From: Macrostomum lignano
Taxonomy: Eukaryota
DNA: 64,000 nucleotides
Direction: 5' to 3'
NCBI GenBank assembly: GCA_002269645.1
Contig: NIVC01001938.1
Span: 124,001 to 188,000 of the forward strand
The notes under the pieces were generated by a model, which had not been told where the DNA came from, made no database searches, and saw nothing but the letters and a program-made list of their open reading frames with translations. Position 1 is the first letter of the stretch. Each line of letters starts with the position of its first letter. A program made the translations under genes and the position numbers. Positions 5,140 through 52,589 of this stretch are shown piece by piece.

Positions 5140-5570
5140 TCAGCATAGTAAGAAATAGAAGCCTTTTCTAAGCACTCCCTCAAAGACGATTTCAACAGTG
5201 TTAGTGTTACCGTTGATGTTAAGCCTCCTTTTCTTTGCAGGATTAGCACTCACTACGTTGCTTTGTTCCATAGCTTCAACAGAGCGTTCAGGCTCGGTTG
5301 CAATGAACGGACTTGATGACTGACCACAAGAAGACCAGAAGTGCACTTTAACATGGTCTTGTACGTCAAACTGAATATAGCGCTCAATAGCTGTCGAAGA
5401 GTGTCCTGTAACATGAGCGACGTCCTCTCTAGCGAAGCCAGCACGGTGTAGAGTACTTGCGCAAGTCTTGCGTAGAGACTGATTAGTGTACCTTTCAGTC
5501 ACTCCAGTTAGGGGAGCCGTTAATTCACGAACAATACCATCCAAGCTGTGCCGGCCGACGGGTGCAACTA
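5140..5570 (-). pseudogene. 5'-truncated Crypton-type tyrosine recombinase fragment
   Basis: PVGRHSLDGIV..YTNQSLRKTCASTLHRAGF..DVAHVTGHSSTAIERY matches the YR C-terminal box. The tail KKRRLNINGNTNTVEIVFE parallels KRMKILANGETNVVQFIFE of the first Crypton. Confidence 0.75.
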
Positions 5571-5625
5571 CCAGCAGCAGGATTCGTTGCAGCGGATTAT
5601 TTACTTTCAAAATATCTTAACACTA

Positions 5626-6358: not shown

Positions 6359-7591
6359 CTACAGCTTGCATTTGAGAATTGGCAAAATTGACGATATGTT
6401 TAAACTGCAGGCCAGATCCATGCTGTCCGAGTAGCTCAAGTGCAGGAACCTGTGCACCGTGTACGAGCTCTTCGGAATGCGCTTCGTCTGGAATTTTTGA
6501 CGAATCAGACGCTTGCAGTGGCGACGTTGAACTTTTAGAAGCTTGTCCGGCCTCTGGCAGAACTTGATCAGCTTCTTGGGAACGAATACCTCGTCCCAGA
6601 TGGGCTGGAATGCGTCACCCCTGGCCAGCATGTTGCCGCACCAGTCGGCTGGCTGGCTGCTCGGCTTCAGCGAGGCATATCGTTTGTAGAATGCCTGCAG
6701 CATTATGGGCCCGGTCACCATTACCGCGTCGAAGTGGGTCCTGTTCACTCTCCTGGCCCAATTCCGCTCGAACCATTTCGGCCAGTTCTTCAGCACGAAG
6801 CTCAGGAAGCTGTGATTCGCTCGGCTCATCATCACCGCATTCGATATCATCGAGGTTAGGTTGAAAAGGAACACTGGATGCTCTATTGGCTCCTGACTCC
6901 ACACGGCTGACTCACAGTCGAAGTTCGGAGTCAGCCCCGCTTCCTGAAGCTGCGACGGTCTCAGCAGCGGTGTCGGATCTCGAAGCAGCTCCACATCCGT
7001 GTCGATGTACAGACCGCCGACGTGGTGCAGCACGACCAGACGGCCGATGTCCGATCGCTCCAGCCCGTTGACCAGCTTGCGGTAGCTTTGAACAAGGTAC
7101 GGATAGTGCTTCGAGATGAGCTCGGAGATCTGCTTGTCGTCCCAATGCATGAAGTACCAGCGGTCAGCGAGGAATCCGTCCGTATTCGAGCTGTTTCTGT
7201 CAGCGCTGCTGCTATCGTTGAGTCTGACATCGAGCAGTCGCCTCCATGAGCGCACAATGGGAACCAGCTTGGCTGGCACTCGACCGTCTTTGCTGGTCCA
7301 GTGCACCAGCGGCGGGATGGAGTCCGGGAAGCGGTAGGGCAGCTCGCCACAAGTTCGACTGAAGGGTGAAGGCGTTAGCCGTGTAATGTTTATCGTTGAG
7401 TTGTCCGCGGGATCCGTGTCATCGAGACATTCGATGGGCTTAAAGAACTTTTCCGCCATTAAATTCGTAAGAAGAAGCAGATTGAATGCAGATAGCAGCG
7501 TCAGAATGAGCAACATGCTTCGGCTTTTGCCGGGCCTTGTCCAACGGATAAGCATTCTAGTATTAGAAACAGCGATGTAATCTGTAAACAT
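6359..7591 (-). CDS. GT32-family (DXD sugar-binding, OCH1/SUR1-like) glycosyltransferase, copy 1
   Basis: 410-aa open frame with an N-terminal TM anchor (MLLILTLLSAFNLLLL), IPPLVHWT, RSDIGRLVVLHHVGGLYIDTD (DXD), ISNAVMMS and TGP motifs. The true start may be Met at 7555, or splicing into the acceptor at 7582. Confidence 0.85.
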   Translation of the reverse strand: MFTDYIAVSNTRMLIRWTRPGKSRSMLLILTLLSAFNLLLLTNLMAEKFFKPIECLDDTDPADNSTINITRLTPSPFSRTCGELPYRFPDSIPPLVHWTSKDGRVPAKLVPIVRSWRRLLDVRLNDSSSADRNSSNTDGFLADRWYFMHWDDKQISELISKHYPYLVQSYRKLVNGLERSDIGRLVVLHHVGGLYIDTDVELLRDPTPLLRPSQLQEAGLTPNFDCESAVWSQEPIEHPVFLFNLTSMISNAVMMSRANHSFLSFVLKNWPKWFERNWARRVNRTHFDAVMVTGPIMLQAFYKRYASLKPSSQPADWCGNMLARGDAFQPIWDEVFVPKKLIKFCQRPDKLLKVQRRHCKRLIRQKFQTKRIPKSSYTVHRFLHLSYSDSMDLACSLNISSILPILKCKL

Positions 7592-8804: not shown

Positions 8805-9648
8805 GGCTTTTAGCACCAGGGGCGCCAGAACCAGGGGCGTCAGCACCAGAGGCTTTAGCACCAGGGGCGTCAGCACCAGAGGGTTTAGCACCAGGGGCGC
8901 CAGCCCCAGGGGCGCCAGCACCAGGGGCGCCAGCCCCAGGGGCGCCAGCACCAGGGGCGCCAGCCTAATTTTTCCTGGTACGACATTTTTCCACCTTTGC
9001 GATCATCACGGCGCTCGTTGCGAAGCCGCACCTTGTCACCAACTTTGAAGTCGCAGAACTTGGCCGCTCCCAGTCGCTGCTGGTGTGTGCGCACCATGAT
9101 GCGCCAGCACCAGGGGCGCCAGAACCAGGGGCGTCAGCACCAGAGGCTTTAGCACCAGGGGCTTTAGCACCAGAGGGTTTAACACCAGGGGCTTTAGCAC
9201 CAGGGGCTTTAGCACCAGGGGCTTTAGCACCAGGGGCTTTAGCACCAGGGGCTTTAGCACCAGGGGCTTTAGCACCAGGGGCTTTAGCACCAGAGGCTTT
9301 AGCACCAGGGGCTTTAGCACCAGGGGCTTTAGCACCAGGGGCTTTAGCACCAGGGGCGCCAGCACCAGGGGCTTTAGCACCAGGGGCTTTAGCACCAGGG
9401 GCTTTAGCACCAGGGGCGCCAGCACCAGAGGCGCCAGCACCAGGGGCTTTAGCACCAGGGGCTTTAGCACCAGGGGCGCCAGCACCAGGGGCGCCAGCAC
9501 CAGGGGCGCCAGCACCAGGGGCGCCAGCACCAGGGGCGCCAGCACCAGGGGCGCCAGCACCAGGGGCGCCAGCACCAGGGGCGCCAGCACCAGGGGCGCC
9601 AGCACCAGGGGCGCCAGCACCAGGGGCGCCAGCACCAGGGGCGCCAGC
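8805..9648. repeat. 15-bp GC-rich minisatellite (GCACCAGGGGCTTTA / GCACCAGGGGCGCCA) in two blocks
   Basis: Blocks at about 8805-8964 and 9098-9648. Each is followed by the same ~135-bp unique segment (8965 and 9649), i.e. a local 684-bp tandem duplication. Confidence 0.9.
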
Positions 9649-9960
9649 CTAATTTTTCCTGGTACGACATTTTTCCACCTTTGCGATCATCACGGCGCTC
9701 GTTGCGAAGCCGCACCTTGTCACCAACTTTGAAATCGCAGAACTTGGCCGCTCCCAGTCGCTGCTGGTGTGTGCGCACCATGATGCGCTGAGCTCGGCGA
9801 ATTCAGCGATACAGTCGAAGCTTGGTTCGCGCGCGCTCTTCATCCTTGATGCGCAGCCAGTCACGATCCAGTCGAGTTTGGCTCTAGGTAGCGCCTGTCT
9901 GCCGATCTCCACCAGCGAAATCGGAAGGAAGAACAGCAGTGTGCTCAGTTACTCGGGAAT
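9649..9960 (-). mobile_element. Degenerate Ginger/Gypsy-like integrase C-terminal fragment
   Basis: Minus frame reads IRRAQRIMVRTHQQRLGAAKFCDFKVGDKVRLRNERRDDRKGGKM, resembling the region before the GPY/F motif (AQ..Q..Y....F.VGD.V.L.N.RR..RKGGK). Part of it is duplicated at 8965-9097. Confidence 0.55.
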
Positions 9961-12057
9961 GCCGACGTAAGAATTGGATAGCAAATAATGAAAAATCTCA
10001 TTTAGCTAGCCAGTTGCCATTGTATTGTGGTCAGCAATGAATAATTTTTTTATTTAGGACTTGTGACTTGGTGCACGTCAATCAAATAAAGCTGAATTCT
10101 ATTGCTCGGCTAAGTCTTGGCTCTAAAACCCACCGATTCTAACGTAAATCAGTGAGTTGAAATTCAGATTCAGAACATTGCGTCACCAGTATATTTCAGA
10201 GCTACTTCATAGTGCTGCAAGACCTAGCTGGGGCTTAAAGCTTAAATACAGTGGGGTCGAACTAAGCTGTCGTAGCGTAAGTTTGATCATACGTCGGAAC
10301 TTTTACTTAGTTTTAGTTTTAGTTAAGAACGATCTTATCTTACGATGGCTCTATGGAACGGGCCCAGTGTAAATTGCCTGCGCTAATGTGCAAGGTGCGT
10401 GTAGGTTTGCGATGCGAAAGTGTGCTCACCGAACGTGTAAGTGGGGGAGGGTACCAGTAAGGGAGAGACTAGAAAGTCCGACTATGATGTCGTGACTTGC
10501 GCTGCAGTCTCCCCTAGGGACGATCGGGCTGCATGAAAACACCTGTGCAAACCCCTCGTCCCCTAGACTTTATCCGCCTCTGGATGGTGCGGTAGCTGAC
10601 GTTGCGGCCAAGATTATCTAGACAGCAGGCTCGGATTGTTTGAAGGTACTGGCCGCCACCAGTCACCTGTGAAGGAGTACACCCGGTAGAAATTCCCACT
10701 AATGAGACGGGACTTCCGGTCTGTAACAGACGAAGGTTCTTGACCCCAACTGCCCGATGAAATGGCCGAAAAAGGGACTATATGCGAGGCCATGCAAGGA
10801 CAGTCTAGTCAGTGCTGGAAACGAGGATTATTTAGTTAAATTCGGCTCATACTCGGTGATCTTCCCCTCTGATCCTCATCTTCTATTCCATGCCCTGCGA
10901 CAGTCGCACTCAATACCACGTCTCATAGTAAATAAAGCAGACAGAAGCGAACGAGGTGAATAGCTATAAATACCCTGAACAGTGTTGGGCAAAGTTCCGG
11001 CACTTCCGGCAAGTATTTGTAGTTACTTCTGGCAAGTAACTAAAAGTAACTTTTAGTACCGGAAGTTACTTTTTTTAAAGCGGCACTTTTTCGGGTTCTT
11101 TTTTTAGAACGCCGGACTTTGGTAACGGAATTGTTACTTTTTGATAAGTCCGGTCATCCGGTACTTGAAAATGAAATTTTAGGTGCCAAACAGCCATTTA
11201 GCACTAAAAATTTTCAAAAAGCGAAAAATTTTCACCAAAATCCTCGTAGTAAAATTATAAAAAGGTAAAAAATTGATCCCAGATCATGTGGTTTTATTAC
11301 TTTTTAAGTTAAAGAACGTTTTAAGCACCATATTGAATCATAGAATGAAGTAATTATTAGTAACTACTATTTGCTGAAACAAGACACATTCAAAATAATA
11401 AAATCCTTGTTTAACAACCCCTTGGAAGTTTTCTAACCAGGATAACTAGCAGTACATCTGGACGCTACACTCGCGATTCGTGGAACATTTTTGAAGGCCG
11501 ATTTCTTCATTTCAATGTTCGTGCAGGACGACACGAGTGATGCATTCTAAAGGTGTTTTGACTTTTAACAGGCTAAATTTTCTAATTGCAGCGCAAAGGC
11601 ACTAAGCAAGTTATTTAAAGTCTTGTGCGCTGGTCCATCTAAATTAAATTCCAGCCATTTGTTGTCCGGTATCCTTTTTGTTAATTGTTAACTGGCATTT
11701 CTAAGGCTGACAGAATATTATTTTTGATTCTAAATGGCTCAGCAGTACAAAAGTATACTTACACTACTGTAAAAATATAGCTGCTGTAAAACTACAGCAA
11801 AATACCACAGTAGGGCGACAAGAATGGCCCGCACAAACTAAAAGTCGAGCCTAAAGTATTCTACACTGATCATTGTGACACATCTATTGGACAAAAATTA
11901 TCTCCATACATACTTCTGATGAGTCAGAATCAACATTTGAAGATCGGCCTCTAAAAGTTTTTCTGCGAATCGCGACTGTATCGTCCTGGTGTACTGCTAA
12001 TCTTTGTTTAAAGGTGTCATTTATTCACTCAAAGGGGATGTCAACTTAAGCACCAGA

Positions 12058-13275
12058 ATGGAGCCCGAAGTTCAGCTCCGGACCAAACCGACTGAAATCG
12101 ATAACTTGTCGGCCCAGACGACTAGAATCGCCGAGACATCCCATCCGGCTCCCTTCCTTGGGGTCCCAGGGGATAAAGGGGATAAAATGGGGATCTCATG
12201 TCAACTTAAGGCTCTGGAATGGAGCCCGAAGTTCAGCTCCGGCCCAAACCGACTGCAATCGATAACTTGTCGGCCCAGACGACTAGAATCGCCGAGACAT
12301 CCCATCCGGCTCCCTTTCTTGGGGTCCCAGGGGATAAAGGGGATAAAATGGGGATCTCATGTCAACTTAAGGCTCTGGAATGGAGCCCGAAGTTCAGCTC
12401 CGGCCCAAACCGACTGCAATCGATAAGTTGTCGGCCCAGACGACTAGAATCGCCGAGACATCCCATCCGGCTCCCTTCCTTGGGGTCCCAGGGGATAAAG
12501 GGGATAAAATGGGGATCTCATGTCAACTTAAGGCTCTGGAATGGAGCCCGAAGTTCAGCTCCGGACCAAACCGACTGCAATCGATAACTTGTCGGCCCAG
12601 ATGACTAGAATCGCCGAGACATCCCATCCGGCTCCCTTCCTTGGGGTCCCAGGGGATAAAGGGGATAAAATGGGGATCTCATGTCAACTTAAGGCTCTGG
12701 AATGGAGCCCGAAGTTCAGCTCCGGACCAAACCGACTGAAATCGATAACTTGTCGGCCCAGACGACTAGAATCGCCGAGACATCCCATCCGGCTCCCTTC
12801 CTTGGGGTCCCAGGGGATAAAGGGGATAAAATGGGGATCTCATGTCAACTTAAGGCTCTGGAATGGAGCCCGAAGTTCAGCTCCGGCCCAAACCGACTGC
12901 AATCGATAAGTTGTCGGCCCAGACGACTAGAATCGCCGAGACATCCCATCCGGCTCCCTTCCTTGGGGTCCCAGGGGATAAAGGGGATAAAATGGGGATC
13001 TCATGTCAACTTAAGGCTCTGGAATGGAGCCCGAAGTTCAGCTCCGGACCAAACCGACTGAAATCGATAACTTGTCGGCCCAGACGACTAGAATCGCCGA
13101 GACATCCCATCCGGCTCCCTTCCTTGGGGTCCCAGGGGATAAAGGGGATAAAATGGGGATCTCATGTCAACTTAAGGCTCTGGAATGGAGCCCGAAGTTC
13201 AGCTCCGGCCCAAACCGACTGCAATCGATAAGTTGTCGGCCCAGACGACTAGAATCGCCGAGACATCCCATCCGG
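12058..13275 (+). repeat. 161-bp tandem array (~7.6 copies) inside the left TIR
   Basis: Units start at 12058, 12219, 12380, 12541, 12702, 12863, 13024 and 13185. About 1.6 inverted copies lie at about 17211-17463. Confidence 0.95.
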
Positions 13276-13959
13276 TTTCAAGTGACGAAGCTCTATTCAA
13301 TTCGAATATCGCATTAGCGGGTGTATTTTATTTCAGCTATTATACATTGATTGTTAAGTAATAAAAATGATTTGCTCGTATCGAAACCTGTTAAAAATGC
13401 TGATCTGGAAACTCAGTTTGAAAAAATTAACTTGTAAATTCGTTTGGTTATTAGTAAGCAGAACTTTTGACGATAAACCGAAACCATGTATATTGGTAAA
13501 ATAAAGAATATCACGCAAGGCTGTACAAGTTATGACGTAATGGATACAAAGCATATCATGCAAAGCTGTACAAGTTATCAAAGTAATAAAAACAAAGCAT
13601 GTCATGCAAAGCAGCACACGTTTTTAAGCAAATAAAGTAACGCCTCTCACGCAAAGCTTAGTAAAATCATAATTGCAAAAGTTTCTCAGTCCTAAGAAAC
13701 GGTTTTTGGGTTTAAGTTCTTTGCTTCAGTAAAAAATACTTCCAATTTTTAGTTAATTGTGAGTCTAAAAGAAATTGAAACAACTAATTCAAAGCTTTTG
13801 TTATTTGATGTCAGTCTGAATTATCTTCACATGTAACCTATGGTACGTAAAGAATGCGTGAGATGACATTGTTTCTTAATCTGCATGTCCTTTAAAATCT
13901 GCAATACAAAACGTACAGTACACTCGCTTAAAACAATTGTATTTTCGCTAAAAATGCTT

Positions 13960-16896
13960 TTACGAGTTTAAAAGTGCAACGAGCACGATGCACTCAGGCT
14001 CACGTACGAACGGGTTATAGTCTGACGTAACTTTCATGTCGTCAATTCTCGTCCACACACAGCTCAGTACGCTTGCTGTGAAATGTCCCGATTTCAGTCG
14101 GTTTCCATGGTGTGATATTGTGGCCACTGGCTTACCAAGTGTAGAAACACCCCCTGACCTTGAAGAAAAGCTTACAGGAGTTTGAAGCTTAAGGTGGCCA
14201 TCCATACTAGCACGATCAAGATATATCAGGGTAAACTTTCCAGGTGTTACTACGATCTCTTGATTACAATCGCCCAGGCAATTGGCGTCCGAACATTTCA
14301 CTACCTGAGGAGCGACAAAAGCGCAGAAGATTTTGTCTAAACTGACAATTGAGCGCTCAAATTGACAGAGAGGAATGCAAATCACTCTGTTATCGATTGT
14401 GCCAACAGGAACTTCAGCACTTGTGCGCTGGCAATCCCGACAAGTTTGAATGAGTGAAAATTCTGTGAAAGCATCTGATGACAGAAATTCCAGATGTATT
14501 AGAAGCGTTTGAACAAATTCGTTGACGCAATGGTGCTGATTTGTTTGAAATGAATCTGGATGTTGCAACCGAACTGCCGTTAACAGTGGAGTGACTGTTG
14601 CAGACCGCTGTTGCATCTCCGTCAGAAGACGAAGCAGCTCTCGATGGACTTGGTCGTTGCTAGTCTCTTTTAAAATGCATCCATTAGAATGCAGGCAGAG
14701 AAACAATTGCACTGCTGCATTTGCGTAGCACTGCAGGCCATTATTTGGCAACCCAAATAACTTCTTCGGCGAATTCAATGAACCAGTAGCATTTGAACTG
14801 TGCCTCTGTTCATCTTGCTGCGATTCAGCACTGTCTCTGCGAGGTGCATTTGGAGCTGGATGACCACCAGATTGATCATTGTAAAGATTGGCAATCAGTG
14901 CTTTTGGCAAAGCACTGTCAATAAATCGGAAGCTGCTGCCGCACATGTTGTAGCTTTCGGGGTGATATGCATAACAGCCTAGCATTCTAACCACAGCCAT
15001 AACATGACTGTCACACCCTGCTGTCCTGCTTCCGGCCTTTGAGGATGAAAAGTAGCCATGCAGACGCAGCAGCCCCGAGTCACGAAATCCGAATCGGTTA
15101 CCACTTGCAGTTTCGCAAATACGAAGGACAACTCGGTAAGTTTTTGACCGATGACGGGAATGAAGAACGGCTAAATATATCCAAGATGGCCTCCATTCTC
15201 CAAACTTACTGCTCCACCCCTTTGGTGGCGCTCGCTGATGAAACTTCCAGCATTTTAAATGGCTTGGCAGTTCAGAAATCAACAATTCGAAATCGCGCCA
15301 CGAGTCTCCAGCGTAGCTACTGAGCACCTCATGAACTCTGACGTTTTCGATGTAGCGTTTTGACTGAAGAACGTGGTATGGGCCGATGCTAAGCTCTTCC
15401 AGATTTCTTTCGTCAACGCTGGGGAACCCTGAACTTTCAGGGTCCAGGGGATCCACTGCTGTCCATTTTCGGGTAGAACTCGTTGGTATTCGAGTCAAAT
15501 CGCAATTGTACTCAAGTTGCTCAATTTCGTCTAGCTCATTCGCAATGAAAAGACGTTTAGCAAAGTTCCGTCCGTATTCGAACATGGAGCAATCTGACCA
15601 TGACGGCGGCAGACTCCTTGTAGCTTGAAATCCTGGATGCGAACGGTTGAATTTTGCCATGGAGTTTTCAATAACAACATCGAGCCGGCTGCGTTCGGTA
15701 AACTCTGGGGCATGTAGCCATTGGTACGGCTCCTGTCGCTCATTTATGCATTTGTCCTGCTTGATTGCAGCAAAGCTACATTCTACGAGATAACGGAAAA
15801 GCGTAGCGCAGCGACTTGTATTTGCTTCGATTGATGTAAGCTTTCCTGGTATTGATCGGTCACCAACAGGAGCCTCATTATTTACAAATTCAAACTGCTC
15901 GTTTAGAACTCGGTCACCTGGACTGGTCGGAAATAGAAGCGTCGTGCAGCCTTTACTATTAGTCTCTATAAAGTCGCGGAAGTTAACCGAAGTTGGTGAA
16001 CAAAGTTGGTGGCTGTAACCTTTGTCGAAAATGCCAATAACGTGATAATCTTTCTGTACAGAGCACAGAATGCGCAACAAAATGGGCTCTATTAGTCCTT
16101 CAGCCTCCATGTCAACTTGCATTGCAGTCAAATTCCCATCGCCAATTGTTGGCGAGATAGCGGCGGTAAGGGGAGCGGTGTAGATAATTTTTCCTCTACT
16201 GTTGACAACCGCCATTTTTTTGTTCACATTCATTTTCTTGCCGGAAAAGTAAGTTCGAATTTGCGTGTGGTGTGAGCTGCTCTTAGGGAGATAAAAGTAA
16301 GTATGATCACCCACTAGAAGAACAAGCTTCTTGCCTTTGAGTAGTGTGTGAAATACACCGAGAATAAATTGATCGCGTACTACATTTTCCTCAAGCAGAG
16401 TCTGAATCGGAGTCGACGCTATCGACCTCGGTTGATATGGATCCCGTAGGTACTGCTCCTTGGCAATCTCCCAAAAAATGTCGCATGCTCTTTGGGCAGA
16501 AATGTTGAAATCGAAAGCTAATGATTGAAAGCTGCAACCTTGGCGAAGCTTCTTCAGGTACAAAAATATTCGAGATGGCTTTGTCAAAATACGAAGGCGA
16601 GATACTTCTGGTAACATTTCTGAGAAGCTATCGAAATCACTATAGCTAAGACCGCAAATACGTTTGAACTCCTTCTCATATGCGTTTCGTGGAAAAAGGT
16701 TTGGGTTCAAAAAAACTTTCACATACTTACCACCGACCGCAAGAAACTGAAGCGCCTCTCGTGCGTTTCTCGGAGGCGCGAAGGCTCCAGACGATTCAGA
16801 TGAGCAGCGACCACATCTAGTCGTTTCGAGATGTCGGTTCAAATTGGCTGCTTTGCTGAATTGATGACCACATTGAGAGCAAGTAAAATCGGACAT
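13960..16896 (-). CDS. Transposase (C2H2 ZnF + HTH + DDE_Tnp_4-like + SWIM-like) fused to a ubiquitin-specific protease (peptidase C19)-like domain, 978 aa
   Basis: ATG at 16896. CSQCGHQFSKAANLNRH (C2H2-like); LFLYLKKLRQGCSFQSLAFDFNIS-type HTH; catalytic candidates VGDHTY (16308), IFDKGY (16026), RYLVECSF (15783); SKAGSRTAGCDSHV (SWIM-like). C-terminal GLPNNGLQCYANAAVQ Cys box, CRDC/CSDANC, HHGNRLKSGHF His box and WTRIDD. Confidence 0.85.
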   Translation of the reverse strand: MSDFTCSQCGHQFSKAANLNRHLETTRCGRCSSESSGAFAPPRNAREALQFLAVGGKYVKVFLNPNLFPRNAYEKEFKRICGLSYSDFDSFSEMLPEVSRLRILTKPSRIFLYLKKLRQGCSFQSLAFDFNISAQRACDIFWEIAKEQYLRDPYQPRSIASTPIQTLLEENVVRDQFILGVFHTLLKGKKLVLLVGDHTYFYLPKSSSHHTQIRTYFSGKKMNVNKKMAVVNSRGKIIYTAPLTAAISPTIGDGNLTAMQVDMEAEGLIEPILLRILCSVQKDYHVIGIFDKGYSHQLCSPTSVNFRDFIETNSKGCTTLLFPTSPGDRVLNEQFEFVNNEAPVGDRSIPGKLTSIEANTSRCATLFRYLVECSFAAIKQDKCINERQEPYQWLHAPEFTERSRLDVVIENSMAKFNRSHPGFQATRSLPPSWSDCSMFEYGRNFAKRLFIANELDEIEQLEYNCDLTRIPTSSTRKWTAVDPLDPESSGFPSVDERNLEELSIGPYHVLQSKRYIENVRVHEVLSSYAGDSWRDFELLISELPSHLKCWKFHQRAPPKGWSSKFGEWRPSWIYLAVLHSRHRSKTYRVVLRICETASGNRFGFRDSGLLRLHGYFSSSKAGSRTAGCDSHVMAVVRMLGCYAYHPESYNMCGSSFRFIDSALPKALIANLYNDQSGGHPAPNAPRRDSAESQQDEQRHSSNATGSLNSPKKLFGLPNNGLQCYANAAVQLFLCLHSNGCILKETSNDQVHRELLRLLTEMQQRSATVTPLLTAVRLQHPDSFQTNQHHCVNEFVQTLLIHLEFLSSDAFTEFSLIQTCRDCQRTSAEVPVGTIDNRVICIPLCQFERSIVSLDKIFCAFVAPQVVKCSDANCLGDCNQEIVVTPGKFTLIYLDRASMDGHLKLQTPVSFSSRSGGVSTLGKPVATISHHGNRLKSGHFTASVLSCVWTRIDDMKVTSDYNPFVREPECIVLVALLNS

Positions 16897-17795
16897 TACT
16901 AGCAAGTATAAAACGCAATCTGCAACAAATCTGCACCTGTCATAAAACTAAGTAAGAAAAACTGACCAAAACCTTAACTTCATTAATATATCACTTAAAA
17001 TATATCACTTAAACTAATGCTACAAATACTTGACGCACAGTATCAAAAATCTCTCGCCTAAAGTGGTCAAATCAAAACCGCGAAAACATTCTCAAAAATC
17101 CGGAAAAATTAAACGACGGAAATATTACAATGCAAACAATATATAATAGCTAAAATAAAATACACCCGCTAATGCGATATTCGAATAGAATAGAGCTTCG
17201 TCACTTGAAACCGGATGGGATGTCTCGGCGATTCTAGTCGTCTGGGCCGACAAGTTATCGATTGCAATCGGTTTGGTCCGGAGCTGAACTTCGGGCTCCA
17301 TTCCAGAGCCTTAAGTTGACATGAGATCCCCATTTTATCCCCTTTATCCCCTGGGACCCCAAGGAAGGGAGCCGGATGGGATGTCTCGGCGATTCTAGTC
17401 GTCTGGGCCGACAAGTTATCGATTGCAGTCGGTTTGGTCCGGAGCTGAACTTCGGGCTCCATTCTGGTGCTTAAGTTGACATCCCCTTTTGGATGCGATA
17501 ATAGCAAAAACATTATGTGGCATCTTTGAGGAATAACAGCATGTTTAACTCTAGACCAACACATGTTTTTGTTTTTTTCACGAAGACATGTTTAAGTACT
17601 TTTTAATTGGCGGTTCTTTAAAATTAGAAAGGACCGGTAGCGGAAGTACCGGAAGTTACTTTTTTTTAAAGTACCGGTACCGGAACAAGTGCCGGAAGTT
17701 ACTTTCCTTGGAACGGGAAGTTACTTTTTCAGAGTAACTTGCCCAACACTGATTACTGGCCATAAACCTGGCCTTAACCGCTCGGTTAATTATTA

Positions 17796-18282
17796 CACCA
17801 TTTTACCCTCGATTTTGAACAAGGAGAACTTCGAAACTGACAAACTCCTCTTTAATATTGATACTCTATGGTCGGGCACTCAAAATCTACAATCAATATT
17901 GACAGATCAAGCTTCAATTTTGACAAACTCTGGTTCAATTTTGACAATGCACGTTTAGTCAACTTCTCCTGGGAGAGTTCGGTAACAAAGTAATCCAATG
18001 AAAGCCTGAACGGGGCTGAAGTGAGCTGTGCAAAATCAGCTTATTCTGACTTTGCTTTTTGGATCTACAAGTATTGATAAAATTTATTTTTCTCCATCCT
18101 TTACACACAGACTAAAATAGCCTGACTGGTTGGGCTGCAAAGTCCGATTCTATTTTGAAATTGAAGCTTGATCTGTCAATATTGATTGTAGATTTTGAGT
18201 GCCCGACCATAGAGTGTCAATATTGAAGAGGAGTTTGTCAGTTTCGAAGTTCTCCTTGTTCAAAATCGAGGGTAAAATGGTG
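17796..18282. mobile_element. 487-bp MITE with ~135-bp TIRs and TA TSD
   Basis: CACCATTTTACCCTCGATTTTGAACAAGGAGAACTTCGAAACTGACAAACTCC.. is mirrored at the right end. TA at 17794-95 and 18283-84. Confidence 0.85.
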
Positions 18283-18574
18283 TAAGACGGAATTAATTTA
18301 ACGGCGGTGTGCCTTTGGCATTCATAAGAAAATTCGATTTACGAATACGGTACTGGCGGCTGCGAAGCAGTTTTGTACTGAGCCAATGGTTTTTTGGCCA
18401 TAGATATTCTCAGTAGACGGGCTCTCGTGTGCACATATTCTATATATTACCTAGTTGGGCCTAGCAGCGCGCCTCCAGCCGCCGCAGCCGCAGCGCGAGA
18501 ACCCCGGGGTTAAGACCATAGACTATAAATTCTGCTGTTTTCAAGCAGCATTACATGCAGTAGCAGCAGCAGCA

Positions 18575-19533: not shown

Positions 19534-20855
19534 TTAAACTTTGCAGCGGAAAATTGGTACAATCGAGGAGATTCGAATGGAATTACTAAAATTATTTTCG
19601 CGATAACTCAAATGCATAAACTTGTGCACTGTGTAAGAAGTATTTGGAATCTGCTTCAGCTCAAGATTTGATATCGTTAATGGGCTGCAAAACTGCTTCT
19701 GCAGTTTGGAAAGTTTTTCAGGCTTCGCGCAGGCGGTTTTCAATCTTTTTGGCACGTAGGCCACGTCATTCAAAGGATGGAACGCCCCAGGCTCTGCCAG
19801 CATGTTGCCGCACCAGTCGGCAGGTCGGTCACTCTGCTTCAGTGCCGTGTACTTCTTATAGAATTTCTGTAGCATTACGGGTCCCGTGACGTGCACTGCG
19901 TCAATGCTTTTTCTACCCCTCTTCTTGGCCCAATTCTGCTCGAACCACGGCGGCCAGTTTGTTAGCACGAAGCTCAGGAAGCTGTGATTCGCTCGGCTCA
20001 TCATCACCGCATTCAAAATCAGTGCCGGAAGGTCGAACGGGAAAGCGGCGTGCTCTATTGGCTCCTGACTCCACACGGCTGACTCACAGTCGAAGTTCGG
20101 AGTCAGCCCCGCTTCCTGAAGCTGCGACGGTCTCAGCAGCGGTGTCGGATCTCGAAGCAGCTCCACATCCGTGTCGACGTACAGACCGCCGACGTGGTGC
20201 AGCACGACCAGACGGCCGATGTCTGATCGCTCCAGCCCGTTGACCAGCTTGCGGTAGCTTTGAACAAGGTACGGATAGTGCTTAGAGATGAGCTCGGAGA
20301 TCTGCTTGTCGTCCCAGTGCATGAAGTGCCAGCGATCTGTTGAAAAGCTGTCTACGTCCTTGTTACTTCCGTTAGTGATGCTGCCATTGCTGGTGCCGAA
20401 GTCTTGCAGATTATTTGACTTGAGCAGAGCCAGTTGGTCACCTAAGTGTTTATTATAAGATGTTAATAGTCTGTAAAGTTCACTGCCTAAACGGATAGAA
20501 TACTCGTAAGCTAGTGTTGTAAGAGCAAATTTGGTGACAAAAGTCACGGACAGAGCCAGACCTGCAGAGAAGTTCCTGCTGTTATTGATTCTGACATTCA
20601 GCAGTAGCCTCCAGGATCGCACAATGGGAACCAGCTTGGCTGGCACTCGTCCAGACTTGCTGGTCCAGTGCACCAGCGGCGGGATGGAGTCTGGAAACAA
20701 TTCCTGAGTACTGATTATGTCGCTACAATTCCTAAGGCTGTCCAGGTTCACATCGTACTCGTATGTGACAGTCTCCCAGGTGGTGCTAGTGAAACCAAGA
20801 AACAGGTACAGCGCGGAAGCAGAAACCAGAAAGGAGAACACGGCGCGTTTGGCAG
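19534..20855 (-). CDS. GT32-family glycosyltransferase, copy 2 (main exon)
   Basis: Same motifs as copy 1 (LYVDTD). Phase-1 acceptor aaatttcag| at 20856. Candidate first exon 21900-21873 (MLVWRHRTT, CAG|gtaggt). Possible 120-nt in-frame intron at 20561-20442. Confidence 0.85.
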
Positions 20856-21259
20856 CTGAAATTTGTTTTTAAGTAGCAAGAATCGTACGTTTTTCAATGA
20901 TTTACAAAGGGGTAATAAATATAAAGAAAGCGACTAATTAAAAATAGTTAAGTTTCACTAATGTCTCAATAGGTCTCTTAATGAGCTTTCCTCTCTTTAC
21001 TCCCTCTTCGGTGTCTCGATAGGGCCACCGATAACCCCAATCCAAAAGTCTCTTGGTGCGGCATTGGCACTGTCTCTCGCTGGGACCTGATAACCCTATC
21101 TATCGATGATGCACTCATTCTGCATATTCAGAAGTAGGCACTGTAGGCTAAAAAATTTCATTTGGTGATTCAGCTGTCACAAGAGTTCATCAACCGGTTG
21201 GTGATCAAAGTGCCGCGCAGGGTCCGGCGCCACCAGGGGGGCAAGCTGAGGGCATGGCG

Positions 21260-23700: not shown

Positions 23701-24399
23701 TATTTAAATGAAATTCCGCCAAGGTTCGCCATAGCTCGTACCGCTAATGAAAACAAAGTAAAAAAATTGGATAGCAACCAAGACCGACAAAATTACGCTT
23801 CCGTATTAAATTATATGGGAATTTTTCTGAATACTCGTAGCTTAACTTAAAATAAAGTGAGAAACTTTATATCTACTTAGAAAAAAATTGTATGTTCGCT
23901 GTGTACGCAAAATGCATTACAAAGATCGGGATGTCTTGATTTTCGACAAACGAATATAGCAATAGTTTTCCATTGTAAAAAGCAGCTCAGATATTCAAGT
24001 GCAGCTAAGCCAGATGTGAAAACTCGTTAAAAAATTGCTTCGTCACGTGCTATTACTAGCAGTAGTAGTAAAATACAGTCTTTTCTTTTTGCGAGCAAAA
24101 TTATGATTAAGAATTTCGATTGTACAGTACAATTGTCCTACATGTACAATTAGCTTTTGAATCATTAAATTTCATTAAATCATTAAATCATTAAATTTGA
24201 ATCATTATGTACATTAAAAATCCATTTAATCAACAAAATAATATTAGAAGGTATTGCTTTTAGCTTCCGAACAATTACAATTAATTCTAATAAAAAAGCT
24301 ATAAAATGTACACACTTCTATTGATCCTTCAACTGTCAAAATTTGCTCACATGTATACTTAGTATCCCGTTAGCACCAACCTTGATAATAACGCTTCTG

Positions 24400-25950
24400 T
24401 GTCTCTTAGTGAGAGCCCCTATCTCTTTGGTGTGGGCATCTCTGTCTCTTTGGTGTGGGCATCCCTGTCTTTTGGTGTGGGCATCTCTCTCTTTGGTGTG
24501 GGCATCTCTCTCTTTGGTGTGGGCATCTGTCTCTTTGGTGTGGGCATCTCTGTCTCTTTGGTGTGGACATCCCTGTCTCTTTGGTGTGAGCATCTCTCTC
24601 TTTGGTGTGGGCATCTCTCTCTTTGGTGTGGGCATCTCTCTCTTTGGTGTGGGCATCTGTCTCTTTGGTGTGGGCATCTCTGTCTCTTTGGTGTGGACAT
24701 CCCTGTCTCTTTGGTGTGGGCATCTCTCTCTTTGGTGTGGGCGTCTGTCTCTTTGGTGTGGGCATCTCTCTCTTTGGTGTGGGCGTCTGTCTCTTTGGTG
24801 TGGGCATCTCTGTCTCTTTGGTGTGGACATCCCTGTCTCTTTGGTGTGGGCATCTCTGTCTCTTGGTGTGGGCGTCCCTGTCTCTTGGTGTGGGCATCTC
24901 TGTCTCTTGGTGTGGGCATCCCTGTCTCTTGGTGTGGGCGTCCCTGTCTCTTGGTGTGGGCATCCCTGTCTCTTTGGTGTGGGCATCTCTGTATCTTTGT
25001 GGGTGCATCTGTCTCTTAGTTAGGTACCCCTGTCTCTTGGTGTGGGCATCCCTGTCTCTTGATGTGGGCATCCCTGTCTCTTGGTGTGGACGTCCCTGTC
25101 TCTTGGTGTGGGCATCTCTGTCTCTTTGTGTGGGCATCCCTGTCTCTTGGTGTGGGCGTCCCTGTCTCTTGGTGTGGGCATCCCTGTCTCTTGGTGTGAG
25201 CATCCCTGTCTCTTGGTGTGGGCATCCCTGTCTCTTGGTGTGGGCATCCCTGTCTCTTGGTGTGGGCATCTCTGTCTCTTTGGTGTGGGCATCCCTGTAT
25301 CTTTGTGGGTGCATCTGTCTCTCAGTTAGGTACCCCTATCTCTTGGTGTGGGCATCCCTGTCTTTTGGTGTGGACATCTCTGTCTCTTTGGTGTGGGCAT
25401 CTCTGTCTCTTTAAAGTGGGCATCTCTGTCTCTTGGTGTGGGCGTCCCTGTCTCTTTGGTGTGGGCATCTCTGTATCTTTGTGGGTGCATCTGTCTCTTA
25501 GTTAGGTACCCCTGTCTCTTGGTGTGGGCATCCCTGTCTCTTGATGTGGGCATCCCTGTCTCTTTGGAGTGGGCATCTCTGTCTCTTGGTGTGGGCGTCC
25601 CTGTCTCTTGGTGTGGGCATCCCTGTCTCTTGGTGTGGGCATCTCTGTATCTTTGTGGGTGCATCTGTCTCTTAGTTAGGTACCCCTGTCTCTTGGTGTG
25701 GGCATTCCTGTCTTTTAGTGTGGGCATCTCTGTCTCTTTGGTGTGGGCATCCCTGTCTCTTTGGTGTGGGCATCCCTGTCTCTTTGGTGTGGGCATCCCT
25801 GTCTCTTTGGTGTGGGCATCTCTGTATCTTTGTGGGTGCATCTGTCTCTTAGTTAGGTACCCCTGTCTCTTGGTGTGAGCATCCCTGTCTCTTGGTGTGG
25901 GCATCCTTGTATCTTGGTGGGTGTACCTGTCTCTTGGTGGGCGGCCCAAT
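24400..25950. repeat. 18-22-bp complex minisatellite (TCTCTTTGGTGTGGGCATC..)
   Basis: Dense tandem reiteration that explains the many spurious ORFs at 24.3-26 kb. Confidence 0.9.
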
Positions 25951-26227
25951 CTATTAGTTGGGTACCCTGTCTCTTTTTGTGAGGACCCTGGCCAAGAGTT
26001 GACAAAAGTTGAGCTCTGTCATTCGTCAATTTTGGTTACCTCTTTTATTCAGTTTTTAAAGAAGCGCAACTATTGTAATATTGCAATGGCGAATGGAGGG
26101 TCGACACCCTGGCTCCTTCTGTGTACACCACACGGTTACTTTAGGACACTCTGTATTCCACAACTGACTCGTTTCCTCATACGAAATTCATGTTAATGCA
26201 CATTATGTACAAGAATATGTGGTCGAA

Positions 26228-27276
26228 TTATAATCTGCAACCGAAAATCGGTAAAATCGATGATATAGGCGAAGTTGCCATGCGCAATCTGCCCCTGTAG
26301 CTAAGATGCATAAATCTGTGCACAGTAAAAGAGCGATTAGGAATCTGTTTCGTGGAAAACTTTGTGCCATTCAGACGCTTGCAGTGACGACGCTGCAATG
26401 GAGACAGCTTTTCCGCTTTTTTGCACAGCGACTTTAGTCTGTCAGGAATCCATGCCACGTCCCAGATGGGCTGGAAGGCGTCTGCCTCGGCCAGCATGTT
26501 GCCGCACCAGTCGGCAGGTCGGTCGCTCTTCTTTAGAGCCGTGTACTTCTCGTAGAATGTGTGCAGCATTCTGGGTCCCGTGACGCGAAATGCATCAAGA
26601 TGAGATCGAAAGACTTTCTTGGCCCAATTCTGATTGAACCATGCCGGCCAGTTCTTCAGCACGAAGTTCAGGAAGCTGTGTTTCGCTCGGCTCATCATCA
26701 CAGCATTCGAAATCAGTGCCGGAAGATTGAACGTGAAGACTGCGTGCTCAGTAGGCTCCTGACTCCACACGGCTGACTCACAGTCGAAGTTCGGAGTCAG
26801 CCCCGCTCCCTGAAGCTGCGACGGTCTCAGCAGCGGTGTCGGATCTCGAAGCAGCTCCACATCCGTGTCGACGTACAGACCGCCGACGTGGTGCAGCACG
26901 ACCAGACGGCCGATGTCCGATCGCTCCAGCCCGTTGACCAGCTTGCGGTAGCTTTGAACAAGGTACGGATAGTGCTTCGAGATGAGCTCGGAGATCTGCT
27001 TGTCGTCCCAGTGCATGAAGTGCCAGGCCTGGATTCGGCTACCGTTACTCAGCCGTGCCCAGGAGCGCACAATGGGAATCAGCTTGGCAGGCACTCGGCC
27101 GTCTTTGCTGGTCCAGTGCACCAGCGGCGGGATGGAGTCCGGGAAGCGGAAGGGCAGCTCGCCGCACTGCCACTTGTAGCTAAAAATCGACTGCGAAGTC
27201 CAGTTTGCGCTGAGCAGGCAGAGCAGCACCGACGCCACCACCAGGATCAGGAGGAACGATTTCCACTTGTTGGCTG
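26228..27276 (-). CDS. GT32-family glycosyltransferase, copy 3 (main exon)
   Basis: Same motifs. Tandem NAGNAG acceptor (cccag|cag|CCAAC) at 27277/27274. Candidate first exon 27505-27460 (MPSQKLKFPCCCLST, G|gtaagt, phase 1). Confidence 0.85.
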
Positions 27277-28304
27277 CTGGGATTTTATTTGAAAAAGTTT
27301 TGCTTCATTTATAAATTACGAAACAGAGCTGTGTATGGGCTTAAAAGATGATGGTCTCTCGGATTCCCAAGTTTTAGGTTTGTTTTTAAGTTCAGTTTTT
27401 CTCAAGCTCAACTATTGTACGAGCATAAGTGATGTGTTTAAACAAAGGCGGCCACTTACCAGTACTCAAACAACAGCATGGAAATTTTAACTTTTGGCTT
27501 GGCATTCACTTTTGAAAAAAATGATTACGCTATGGTGGTCAATTTCAATCGTCTCGTGTGTGACACATGTAAGTAAAGCAGCCATGGACAGCTAGTGAAA
27601 AATTGTCCCTTAAACACTAAAATACTCACAATTCTGGCAGTAGCACGAAAAGCTTCTGTCGGGGTCAGAAAGAGAGCATGCTACTGCACAGAATGTACTG
27701 TCCATTTTTGTGACCTCTGTGCACAACGATGAAGAGAGAAGAGAGTTTGCTTGTTTGCGCGTGTATGACTGTGCTCGCCAGTCCAAGGCTTGCTGAAAAC
27801 TGCGCTTTGTGTGTCAATATGCTCTCTTTCTCCTTGGTATTGTTAGACTCCGAGACTCCTCTCTATAGAATGCCAGACAAAGTTGCTGAGTAAGAGTTCC
27901 TACCCCGTTAATTACTGAGTTTGTTCAGTACGTGAGGCATGCCCATGAATTATTTTGAATGTACACGTATAAGCGTGAATTCATGACTTGTTACAGCCAG
28001 TTGAAAGTATACTTAACAACATCCTAGACCTGCAGTGGGCCTGGGCTAGAGTTGGAAAACCTGTGCCATTGCAATGTGGTGAGCTGAAGTCAGTCAGAGG
28101 TTTTCAATATTGCCGAGTGTACATTGCATTAAGCTTTCACCCGGATCATACGCGCATTATTGTTCTAACTGTGCAAATTAGGTATGGCCAGAAGTCTGGG
28201 AGGCAGGATTTTCTTCTTGACGATGCCTCTAAACAAAAAAGCAAAGTTCTCCATTCGAGAATTTAGCGCATACTTTTATTCGATTATCTAATATCCATGC
28301 TACA

Positions 28305-29143: not shown

Positions 29144-30237
29144 TTAAACATTACACTTGAGAATTGGTAATATTTCCGACATTGCAGTTAGGCGTAAAAA
29201 ATATCTTCTGTAGCTCATATGTAGAAACCTATGAACCGTGTACGAGCTCTTTGGTATCTGTTTCTGCTTGAACTTTGCATCAGCCAATCGCTTGCAGTAT
29301 TGCCGCTGCAACAAATTCAGCTTGGCAGCATTAGAGCACACTTCCTTCAATCTTGCCGCTCCGTAGTACAAATCGCTGAGGGGCTGGAATGTGTCCTGTT
29401 CCGAGAGCATGCTGCCGCACCAGTCCTTGGGGCGGTCACTCTGCTTCAGCACTGTATAATTATCGTAAAATTTCTGCAGCATCAAGGGTCCCGTCACCTT
29501 TATCGCATCATTGACTGATCGTCTTGTGGCTTTCTCCCAATTCCGCTCGAACCATGATGGCCAGGTCTTCAGTACGAAGCTCAGGAAGCTGTGATTCGCT
29601 CGGCTCATCATCACAGCATTTGAAATCAATGACTTATTCATATTGAATATGAAAGTTGGATGCTCGACTGGCTCCTGACTCCACACGGCTGACTCACAGT
29701 CGAAGTTCGGAGTCAGCCCCGCTCCCTGAAGCTGCGACGGTCTCAGCAGCGGTGTCGGATCTCGAAGCAGCTCCACATCCGTGTCGATGTACAGACCGCC
29801 GACGTGGTGCAGCACGACCAGACGGCCGATGTCCGATCGCTCCAGCCCGTTGACCAGCTTGCGGTAGCTTTGAACAAGGTACGGATAGTGCTTCGAGATG
29901 AGCTCGGAGATCTGCTTGTCGTCCCAGTGCATGAAGTGCCAGCGGTCAGTGGGGAATTCGTCAGCATTCGAGCTGTTTCTGTCAGCGCTGCTGCTATCGT
30001 TGAGTCTGACATCGAGCAGTCGCCTCCATGAGCGCACAATGGGAATCAGCTTGGCTGGCACTCGACCGTCTTTGCTGGTCCAGTGCACCAGCGGCGGGAT
30101 GGAGTCCGGGAAGCGGTAGGGCAGCTCGCCGCACTGCCACTTGTAGCTAAAAATCGACTGCGAAGTCCAGTTTGCGCTGAGCAGGCAGAGCAGCACCGAC
30201 GCCACCAGGATCAGGAGGAACGATTTCCACTTGTTGG
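29144..30237 (-). CDS. GT32-family glycosyltransferase, copy 4 (main exon)
   Basis: Same motifs. Phase-1 acceptor atattcag| at 30238. Candidate first exon 32846-32825 (MSACLTF, C|gtaagc) lies beyond the GATA array. Confidence 0.85.
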
Positions 30238-30284
30238 CTGAATATTGGGGAGTTCATTTGCGGAAAATATTTGTTCTATCTAAT

Positions 30285-32731
<2,447 letters not shown>

Positions 32732-34084
32732 CTCTGCAAAAAATTTTTGTCCTGAAATCTCATTTAGAAAATCTTGACAAGAAAAATGCATAATAAAAAT
32801 ACATAATTGTTTTAACCTGCTTACGGAAAGTCAAGCAGGCAGACATGCACCCGATAGAGCGATCCTTTTCACATGCAATTACTGGCACAAGCTGTTTCAA
32901 TACTAGCTAGAACTGATGAAACTGTGTGCCTCTCTGTACACGTAGCTCTGTGCGCGTCAGCACACGTTTATTTATTATTACCTGCTCGCGCTTGGACACA
33001 GTACGAGGGTACAAATGCTTTTATTGTTCAATGCCTCAGTACAGTTAGACAACCTATGAGGTCTCAGTCAGCTAGCTGCTGTTACAGGGAGGGACAGTGG
33101 CTGCTGATTGGCTCTTTCTCTCTTTACAAAGTCGTACCCAGAGCTAAGAGTTTTACATTAACAGTCATACGTTAACTTCTTTAGGCAAAAAGTAGAGTCA
33201 AGTTTAGTTTATAAAAAGGACTGCGACGACAGCTAACTAAATATGCATGATTCCAGCCTGCCTGCAGGGCGTCAGAATCAAGCAAAATCAAGCAAAGCCT
33301 GACTAGCTATTCGAAGTCGTGAGGCATAGCAAGACCAGGGACTTTTAAAGCTAGCACCACTAGACTGCTGGAAGCTAGAATAAAACGCACAAATCAAATA
33401 AACTAGTTCTTTCGAGTTAGGGCAACTGGGGATAGGGAACTGGGGGGAGAGCAGGGAAACCGACAAACGAATAGAAATGCACAGGGCATTAATATGTGTC
33501 GCGACTTTCCTAGTCATTTCTTAGTTCACCTTCACTTGTCTCTGTTTACTCCGTTTTCTCTCTCTCTGTCTAGCTCAATCTTGTTATTCTTATCTCTCTC
33601 TCCCTTGCTGCGTTCTGATTGGCTCTCCGTTCTCGCCTCTTTCCTCAGTCGCGCACTCCACCCCCTCTCTTTATTATTCTGGGCTCAACCCCCCAAAGTT
33701 AAATGTTCTATAAATATATCGGTTTGGGCCCTGCGCCCACTTACTGCTCATCCTGCTCCTTCAATTTAACTCCAATTAAATACTCTTTAGTTTAGTATTT
33801 TTTCTACAATATGTGCTCGTTGTATGTACAATTTAAGAAATTATTCACCCTCCTAACCCCCAGATCCTCCTTGCTTCTCTGCGAAGCACTGACAAAGAGT
33901 ATATGATGCCTTGCACCGTGCAGGTTGCCCCTTAAATCACAAATCCACACTGCTATCATTTCCAAGAGCATGCTTCAGTACAAGCTTTAAATGCTGCATA
34001 TATGTTCAGCCTACTGTTGATGGTGTCTACTGTCTAATGCTCAACTCGAGCAACCACGGAATCTGGAGTGAGCCTCCGCAGCCA

Positions 34085-52190: not shown

Positions 52191-52589
52191 TACAGTACAG
52201 CTCATTTCCCAGGTAGCGAAGCACCGTTACTAGCTGGATAAATAGATTCGCTTTGAGAGTAGAATATAGATTTAAGCGACGTAACTGGAAATGTGTCTAC
52301 CTTCCTGTGTATATAGGAATCTATAACATTTTTCGCATATTATTGATAACCTGCATTGAGTACCGCTCATTGTAACTAGCCAGTCGTTGTATTTCTATTC
52401 GTCTGTCTTCTTAGATCTGTTTGGCTAAAATATACGCTGGTTTGTTTGTTGCTCGTTGAGTCATTAGCAGCCTGTATTGTTAGTTTAGAGTGATAAATTC
52501 TTGACCTACGAGTTTGAGTCTCCTTTTTGAATTTTACTCTGCTTTAGTTTATTCTCTTGTACTTTAAAAGCGTGTTTTATAGTCGAAGT

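Follow-up and report, generated by a model that had tools for sequence, protein, structure and literature searches.

A young Spy-type DNA transposon of the flatworm Macrostomum lignano with a predicted ubiquitin-specific protease fused to its transposase

The stretch of DNA analysed here, called the window, comprises 64,000 nucleotides (nt) of the Macrostomum lignano genome (assembly GCA_002269645.1, contig NIVC01001938.1, positions 124,001 to 188,000, forward strand). It holds a complete, autonomous DNA transposon of 5453 bp, located at 12034-17486 with its coding strand minus, in which two inverted arms enclose a single open reading frame (ORF). The ORF encodes a DDE transposase fused at its C-terminus to a domain of the ubiquitin-specific protease (USP, peptidase C19) type. 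By its target site and ends the element belongs to the Spy transposons, for which such a fusion has apparently not been described. The features of the element are listed below in coordinate order, with positions in the window and residues in amino acids (aa).

12031-12033, unstranded: host AAA half of the AAATTT target, abutting the left terminus (12 of 12 termini and empty sites)
12034-17486, minus strand: complete Spy-type DNA transposon (33-nt ends, boundary common to all copies, empty sites)
12034-13363, unstranded: left inverted arm, 3' of the ORF, with the terminal inverted repeat (TIR) and then about eight 161-bp units (repeat search and reading of the sequence)
13960-16896, minus strand: transposase-USP ORF, 978 aa and stop, uninterrupted, with the same intact ORF in 12 genomic copies
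13963-14760, minus strand: USP/peptidase C19 domain, aa 713-978 (Pfam UCH, AlphaFold2 model, Foldseek, profile)
14761-14856, minus strand: low-complexity linker, aa 681-712, near-neutral and unalignable between subfamilies
14857-15636, minus strand: C-terminal transposase region, aa 421-680, ending in a SWIM-like G-C-x-x-H motif (C628/H631)
15781-16308, minus strand: DDE core D197-D291-E372 (R368-x3-E372), from the hhalign match
16471-16587, minus strand: helix-turn-helix (HTH) motif of PHIS transposases, aa 104-142 (HTH_Tnp_4 score and hhalign match)
16813-16887, minus strand: weak N-terminal C2HC-like finger, aa 4-28 (zf-C2H2 score below the cut-off)
17123-17486, unstranded: right inverted arm, 5' of the ORF, with the TIR and about two 161-bp units (repeat search and reading of the sequence)
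17487-17489, unstranded: host TTT half of the AAATTT target (termini and empty sites)

The two ends of the element carry an identical 33-nt terminus, GGGGATGTCAACTTAAGCACCAGAATGGAGCCC (opening GGGGATGTCAACTTAAG), at 12034 on the plus strand and at 17486 on the minus strand, and this sequence occurs nowhere else in the window. A repeat search of the window showed that the arms, which are inverted around the ORF, are built of 161-bp tandem units, about eight of them on the left versus about two on the right. The terminal 35 nt recur in each unit in nearly identical form, and the units may represent binding sites for the transposase. Apart from the transposase gene, the ORFs inside the element are solely read-throughs of these repeats. 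It is thus a single-ORF element with TIRs and no second gene of the Myb/SANT or YqaJ kind, as is typical of Spy.

All 12 aligned termini, taken from eight copies, are adjoined by AAA; identity between copies starts at AAAGGGG and the flanks are unrelated. A target site duplication (TSD), that is, a direct repeat of the flanking bases, was found in none of the four complete copies, whose structure reads AAA/GGGG...CCCC/TTT with slashes at the element boundaries. Empty sites were searched by joining 150 nt from each flank of the window copy (11884-12033 and 17487-17636) and comparing the joined sequence with the genome. The joined flanks match 300 of 300 nt (100%) at two loci, C1789:114709-115008 and C51:463206-463505, and about 40 paralogous sites match them at 80-91%. 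Both kinds of site have the sequence CACTCAAATTTTGGATG / ...CAAATTTT..., in which AAA directly adjoins TTT. Because AAATTT is uninterrupted at the empty sites, AAA and TTT are host bases, no duplication took place, and loci identical in their flanks lack the insertion. The roughly 40 related loci place the element within another repeat family. Two exact empty sites fit a neopolyploid genome in which the insertion is hemizygous or specific to a subgenome. Macrostomum lignano is a neopolyploid (PMC10733133), which would explain how a filled site coexists with two exact empty copies.

Spy elements are defined by insertion between AAA and TTT without a TSD (Han et al., 2014; PMC4122938), and 116 intact Spy elements have since been listed with AAA/TTT targets, with TIR primers that start AAAGG (PMC11304231). 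The AAA/TTT target without TSD, the empty sites and the ends shared with a second subfamily of the same genome (subfamily B, below) match this published definition, and every Spy-defining feature that could be tested is present. An earlier reading of the window, made by a model from its letters and ORF translations and referred to here as the sequence-only reading, had assigned the transposase to the PHIS group; that assignment is supported and can be narrowed to Spy by the AAA/TTT insertion without TSD.

The sequence-only reading had also described a single uninterrupted 978-aa ORF within matching TIRs, encoding a C2H2 finger, an HTH, a DDE transposase, a low-complexity linker and a USP/C19 domain with an intact triad and two Cys pairs. 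This description is confirmed. The ORF is intact and is enclosed by identical 33-nt termini and arms. The positions given for the acidic triad (D197 at 16308, D291 at 16026 and E372 at 15783), the catalytic Cys (14730-14728), the His (14085-14083) and the Asp (14043-14038) are all exact, and the linker is found at aa 681-712. Both N-terminal motifs score below their Pfam cut-offs (HTH_Tnp_4, 22.7 bits against 27; zf-C2H2, 18.6 bits against 25.2). The HTH aligns in hhalign. The finger is weak and C2HC-like, with ligands C-x2-C-x12-H-x5-C, the fourth of which is missing in subfamily B; clear C2H2 fingers are present in relatives, namely in protein P0004 and in an ORF upstream of the fusion gene on metagenomic contig L047.

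In a single-sequence scan, the window protein does not reach the Pfam threshold for DDE_Tnp_4; its relative P0009 passes it. An exhaustive profile search of 1.84 billion representative proteins gave 1023 matches. The nearest are proteins of about 650-1100 aa encoded on metagenome contigs of ENA, JGI and Logan, with TARA Oceans samples as the source in several cases, and more distant ones are proteins of about 480 aa with DDE_Tnp_4 and HTH_Tnp_4 by Pfam. Comparing the family with DDE_Tnp_4 proteins, hhalign returned a probability of 100% and an E-value of 7e-45 over 462 columns, which begin in the HTH, take in the catalytic core and end at a C-terminal G-C-C-x-H motif. The alignment pairs D197 with the Asp of DGTY, D291 with the Asp of DRGF and E372 with the Glu of R-x3-E, which supports the DDE assignment of the sequence-only reading. 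D197, G293, R368 and E372 are invariant in the family alignment (A6); D291 is not among its listed invariant columns. In this family the published PHIS spacing is exceeded by about 35-40 residues, inserted after the second D and before the conserved proline. The C-terminal transposase region is kept as far as the 480-aa DDE_Tnp_4 relatives, and one relative gives a weak SWIM match. Without the USP, the protein measures about 690 aa; active Spy transposases have been reported at about this size, ~700 aa (PMC11304231).

The C-terminal domain matches Pfam UCH (PF00443) with 37.5 bits against a cut-off of 23.9 and an E-value of 2.6e-9, over aa 715-958 and profile positions 2-237 of 254. At about 265 aa it has the length of a minimal USP core. 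The Cys box GLPNNGLQCYANAAVQ contains C723 (14730-14728), with N718 as the oxyanion Asn. Two Cys pairs, C819-x2-C822 and C868-x4-C873, would form the zinc ribbon. The His box includes H929 and H938 (SGHF, the latter at 14085-14083) and is followed by D952/D953 in WTRIDD (14043-14038). An alignment of 29 sequences shows little or no variation at the catalytic Cys, the oxyanion Asn, the zinc-ribbon Cys, the catalytic His and the G-H of the His box, and the catalytic Asp is likewise conserved. Cys box and His box residues are retained in every fusion relative that was read. Much of the transposon clade has Q-H-C-x-x-E-F in place of the QQDAxEF box.

An AlphaFold2 model of aa 703-978, built on the 29-sequence domain alignment, has a mean predicted local distance difference test score (pLDDT) of 94.1 and a predicted template modelling score (pTM) of 0.91; as this alignment includes canonical USPs, the model shows compatibility with the fold and says nothing on enzyme activity. 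An earlier run with a three-sequence alignment reached a pLDDT of 52 and was discarded. When the model was compared with the Protein Data Bank (PDB) by Foldseek, the top matches were all USP catalytic domains (USP2, USP18, USP46, USP35, USP21, USP15, USP30 and USP7), with E-values near 1e-17, a probability of 1.00 and TM scores of 0.72-0.76. A sequence profile of the family, over the full length of the profile, also matches USP15 and USP2 of the PDB at an E-value of 1e-51; a single-sequence phmmer search of the PDB returned zinc-finger noise only. The C19 fold anticipated by the sequence-only reading for this part of the protein was thus found by Pfam, by profile and by the model. By model and alignment, the domain has a USP fold with all catalytic and zinc-binding residues of active USPs, and we infer that it is an active isopeptidase which travels with the transposase.

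A six-frame search of the genome identified at least 12 intact full-length copies at 99-100% protein identity, along with many decayed or partial copies and diverged subfamilies. The 12 intact ORFs have 0-6 differences per 2934 nt (mean 0.11%), and four are identical. Among them 17 codons vary, 14 non-synonymously and 3 synonymously, nearly all private to one copy. Private variants in near-identical copies are the pattern of a very recent burst, and the variant codons are as expected for neutral decay after insertion. The element is very young and probably still mobile. Complete copies measure 5292, 5453, 6258 and 7062 bp and differ by whole 161-bp units, whose number varies between the window and loci L027, L028, L033 and L035.

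The genome contains two further subfamilies, and both retain the catalytic residues. Subfamily B (locus L035) has an intact ORF of 988 aa with the full fusion, 56% identical in protein to the window family (A). Its ends read AAA/GGGGATGTGAACTTAAG...CCCC/TTT and its arms have the same 161-bp repeat architecture as the window element. In a third subfamily (C), at about 45-50% identity, the USP domain is intact in one deletion derivative; the full-length copies examined are interrupted. This derivative, locus L023 (C3474:52299-53720), is internally deleted and has an uninterrupted 473-aa frame, in which a piece of the HTH region is joined directly to the transposase C-terminus and the intact USP. 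It is possible that L023 is a non-autonomous element still encoding the deubiquitinase.

To compare constraint along the protein, the proportions of synonymous (pS) and non-synonymous (pN) differences between subfamilies A and B were calculated by region, since a dN/dS ratio between subfamilies cannot be computed with dS saturated. Synonymous sites are saturated throughout (pS 0.79-0.93). The pN is lowest in the DDE core (0.20), followed by the C-terminal transposase region (0.23), the N-terminus (0.33) and the USP (0.38); it reaches 0.64 in the linker, which has a pS of 0.87 and evolves almost neutrally. With pS saturated, a USP pN far below that of the linker indicates purifying selection on the USP. 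Judged from these comparisons, constraint on the USP is weaker than on the catalytic core and far from that on the near-neutral linker.

The fusion extends well beyond this genome. At least eight proteins, P0008 (1048 aa), P0019 (955 aa), P0023 (1119 aa), P0039 (1842 aa), P0041 (1639 aa), P0072, P0077 and P0136, have this type of transposase followed by a C-terminal UCH, each as a separate cluster at 50% identity. They come from marine and other metagenomes, and several of these clusters are multi-copy across samples. Together with the 12 genomic copies and subfamily B, they bear out the expectation of the sequence-only reading that other copies would retain the fusion; selection on the USP, which it had also proposed to examine, is evident from pN and pS in place of a dN/dS ratio. 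A word-indexed protein search gave no match with the whole protein and one metagenomic fragment with an eight-sequence profile. The metagenomic contigs L042-L049 have no convincing TIRs and probably end within elements. On two of them the transposase-USP gene is closely preceded by another ORF. The one on L047 (202-1944) has 580 aa with C2H2 fingers like those of the N-terminal extension of P0004, and the one on L042 (1568-2932) has 454 aa and no Pfam match; they may be separate exons or a second gene.

Trees were built for both parts of the protein. In the USP tree, 9 of 10 transposase-linked USPs and five short fragments form a clade (support 97/93), apart from host-like USPs, from a protein that joins a PIF1 helicase to UCH and from fish USP18-like arrays. 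The only transposase-linked USP outside it is that of P0008, on a very long branch. In the transposase tree, USP-bearing members are spread across the whole clade of ~700-aa proteins and interleaved with domain-less ones, some of which may be shortened by contig ends. A single clade of transposase-linked USPs fits a single old capture, and one old capture followed by losses is the simplest reading of the two trees, though not a proven one. The same protein search yielded clusters with 6-10 tandem USP domains, P0011, P0013 and P0024, from Antennarius striatus, Pempheris klunzingeri and a pocket gopher; one member of these clusters is named USP18-like in its NCBI entry.

Outside the element, the window contains several unrelated features. 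About 300 bp beyond its right end lies a 128-nt inverted repeat (17793-17920 and 18158-18285), 98% complementary with arms 237 nt apart, which may be a small insertion resembling a miniature inverted-repeat transposable element. Five paralogous single-exon ORFs on the minus strand (6359-7591, 19534-20868, 26228-27304, 29144-30253 and 37046-38158), of 358-444 aa from stop to stop, have long identical stretches in common. The one that was tested carries a DXD glycosyltransferase motif and matches Pfam Gly_transf_sug with 41.5 bits, and the cluster looks like a local tandem gene expansion. A tyrosine-recombinase element of the Crypton/DIRS kind has probably left the ORF fragments at 977-1837 and 5140-5616 on the minus strand, which match DUF3504 and, weakly, Phage_integrase. 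At 53281-62598 on the plus strand, exons of a Ski2/Brr2-type helicase (DEAD, Helicase_C, SNRNP200 winged helix, Sec63) resemble ASCC3/SNRNP200. Microsatellites of the (TATC)n type with extreme GC and AT skew occupy 30284-32755 (about 2.5 kb) and 62287-63554 (about 1.2 kb), and further low-complexity arrays lie at 8965-9732, 24325-26018, 48012-49177 and 52531-53323. ORFs at 47015-47524 and 50884-51474 had no match among the families tested.

The reading we prefer, with a probability of roughly 0.6, is that the window holds a recent autonomous Spy transposon whose transposase is fused to an active USP acting mostly in cis. A Spy-type transposase of about 700 aa (finger, HTH, DDE core and Cys/His region) is followed by a flexible linker and a complete USP, and it places the element precisely at the AAA/TTT junction with no target duplication. 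A protein that has a deubiquitinase attached would, with its partners, be the first substrate of that enzyme, and the fusion of the USP to the transposase is why cis-protection is preferred as the mechanism. The USP would strip ubiquitin from the transposase or the transpososome, allowing escape from proteasomal turnover or from another ubiquitin-dependent restriction. Tethered to the DNA-bound transposase, it could also clear ubiquitin from chromatin or repair factors at donor and target sites. The VTD and OTU deubiquitinases of Helitrons have been suggested to protect proteins needed for transposition, and similar protection has been suggested for herpesvirus deubiquitinases (PMC9741609).

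Several points count against this interpretation. Related transposases, P0004, P0006, P0007 and P0009, appear without a USP, so the domain is not essential for transposition in the lineage. The USP evolves faster than the transposase core (pN 0.38 versus 0.20), in a comparison where saturated dS precludes a dN/dS ratio. Catalytic competence is read from the sequence and from a model whose alignment includes canonical USPs. The substrate could be the transposase, chromatin, repair factors or a ubiquitin-like modifier. The Spy assignment follows published defining features and not a tree that includes reference Spy sequences.

The question of substrate leads to a different reading, which we regard as possible and on balance doubtful, in which an active USP has local chromatin or DNA-damage-response proteins as its main substrates (for example H2A/H2B-Ub, PCNA-Ub or the products of RNF8/RNF168). 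The DNA-bound transposase would then carry the USP to the element or to the sites of excision and integration, so that silencing would be blunted or break repair steered there. The flexible linker does tether the USP to an enzyme that binds DNA and makes double-strand breaks, and fold and catalytic residues appear intact in alignment and model; Bao et al. proposed that the Ulp1 and OTU proteases of transposons act on DNA-repair pathways (PMC2836005). However, the sequence has no sign of a histone- or PCNA-specific USP, the Foldseek matches (USP2, USP18, USP46, USP35, USP21) do not separate substrates, and a chromatin-reader domain was not found in a Pfam scan of the protein.

It is improbable that the domain is a non-catalytic module that binds ubiquitin or a ubiquitin-like protein for recruitment, or a protease for another modifier (ISG15-, FUBI- or NEDD8-like). 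Such a role would accord with the presence of USP18 (ISG15-specific) and USP36 (FUBI) among the structural matches, with the USP18-like name of an entry in the well-scoring fish tandem arrays, and with the change of QQDAxEF to Q-H-C-x-x-E-F in much of the transposon clade. Pseudo-enzymes usually lose catalytic residues, but all fusion lineages examined keep the oxyanion Asn and the catalytic Cys-His-Asp triad. To our knowledge, ISG15 does not occur in invertebrates, which speaks against an ISG15-type protease.

Host-fragment capture by transposons occurs, the domain is absent from some relatives and the linker of the window copy contains SGG, but it is very improbable that the USP is a passenger host fragment (transduplication), an assembly or annotation chimera or a self-processing protease, readings effectively excluded by conservation and by a GG site that is not conserved: twelve copies and subfamily B (56% identity) have the fusion intact and in frame, the third subfamily keeps an intact USP in its deletion derivative, at least eight metagenomic clusters below 50% identity carry the fusion, the USP pN is well under that of the linker with pS saturated, the fusion USPs form a clade of their own apart from host-like USPs, and SGG is absent from subfamilies B and C. 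Self-cleavage at the GG site was accordingly rejected as a candidate, the linker SGG not being conserved across subfamilies. A domesticated host gene was rejected on the TIRs, the copy number and the empty sites.

A wider and more tentative view can be put forward. The USP-bearing elements may be an old, unrecognised Spy subgroup spread across animals and marine eukaryotes, whose transposase carries its own counter-defence deubiquitinase and erases ubiquitin marks at the element and its target sites. The marks would be those which the host uses for transposase degradation, element silencing or double-strand-break signalling. Unrelated transposon classes have repeatedly acquired proteases of the ubiquitin/SUMO system, and we know of no demonstration of what such proteases do for the element. 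If the wider view is true, ubiquitin removal would be a general requirement, met independently by transposon classes with USP, OTU, VTD and Ulp1.

The element offers a tractable case, in which the protease is fused to a simple single-protein transposase and the family is apparently active now. Transgenesis works in Macrostomum lignano, and Spy transposases have already been shown to jump in human cells. Given the fused protease, the active family and these two systems, a comparison of wild-type, Cys-to-Ala and USP-deleted transposases is feasible. The element also extends the range of Spy to a fourth animal phylum, and it reveals a large fusion family in marine metagenomes that is essentially absent from annotated protein sets. 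A transposase with its own stabilising deubiquitinase would be a natural design of interest to tool builders.

Among known systems, the closest are the Spy elements themselves. Silkworm Spy and cgSpy/cvSpy resemble the window element in precise AAA/TTT insertion without TSD, a single ORF, signs of recent activity, TIRs that start GG and are sometimes long (up to 691 bp), and a transposase part of about 700 aa in which an N-terminal HTH precedes a DDE_Tnp_4-like core. Spy transposases have been described as a DNA-binding domain plus DDE, with most ORFs at 650-716 aa, and are known from Arthropoda, Cnidaria and Mollusca only (PMC4122938; PMC11304231). In contrast, the window element adds about 300 aa of linker and USP, has a weak N-terminal finger and arms of 161-bp repeats, and resides in a flatworm, outside the reported phyla. 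No protease domain is reported on any Spy transposase in the published descriptions, and a Hydra element, Hyvu-Spy-1, is listed without comment with an ORF of 963 aa (PMC11304231).

The sequence-only reading knew of no PHIS transposase with a C19 USP. For Spy this stands, as none has been reported; precedents do exist in an IS4/IS5-type transposase with C19 of Trichomonas vaginalis and in the UCH of Helentrons. The T. vaginalis protein, XP_001314237.1, joins transposase_11/DDE_Tnp_1 (pfam01609) to Peptidase C19 and was noted by Bao, Kapitonov and Jurka (2010; PMC2836005), citing Gladyshev and Arkhipova (2009). Having an IS4/IS5-type DDE and a C19 domain in one protein, it is the closest precedent found, and the literature on USP or UCH with a DDE transposase yielded nothing specific beyond this remark. 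The remark is one sentence on a protist protein, without element structure, target site, conservation or phylogeny, and our comparison with it is by description only.

Helentrons and Helitrons also have papain-fold ubiquitin proteases fused to or beside the mobility enzyme. OTU, VTD and UCH deubiquitinase-like domains are found in them (PMC9741609; PMC11417382), and UCH is reported to be a stable part of HLE2 elements (PMC11417382). Unlike Spy, they are rolling-circle elements with a RepHel enzyme in place of a DDE transposase. P0099, a PIF1-like helicase with UCH from our protein search, looks Helentron-like, and its position in the USP tree, apart from the transposase-linked clade, suggests a separate capture. 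Ginger1 transposases carry a C-terminal OTU or Ulp1, and Ulp1 occurs in Mutator-like elements (PMC2836005). Both share with the window element a DDE cut-and-paste transposase followed by a cysteine (iso)peptidase of the ubiquitin/SUMO system, but their transposases are retroviral-integrase-like or Mutator-like, their proteases belong to OTU or C48, and they make TSDs. Transposon-borne deubiquitinases are thus already known, and the USP fusion is apparently undescribed for Spy elements. Rather than a categorically new system, the element represents a USP-bearing branch of Spy, documented here by its ends, target site, activity, conservation and phylogeny.

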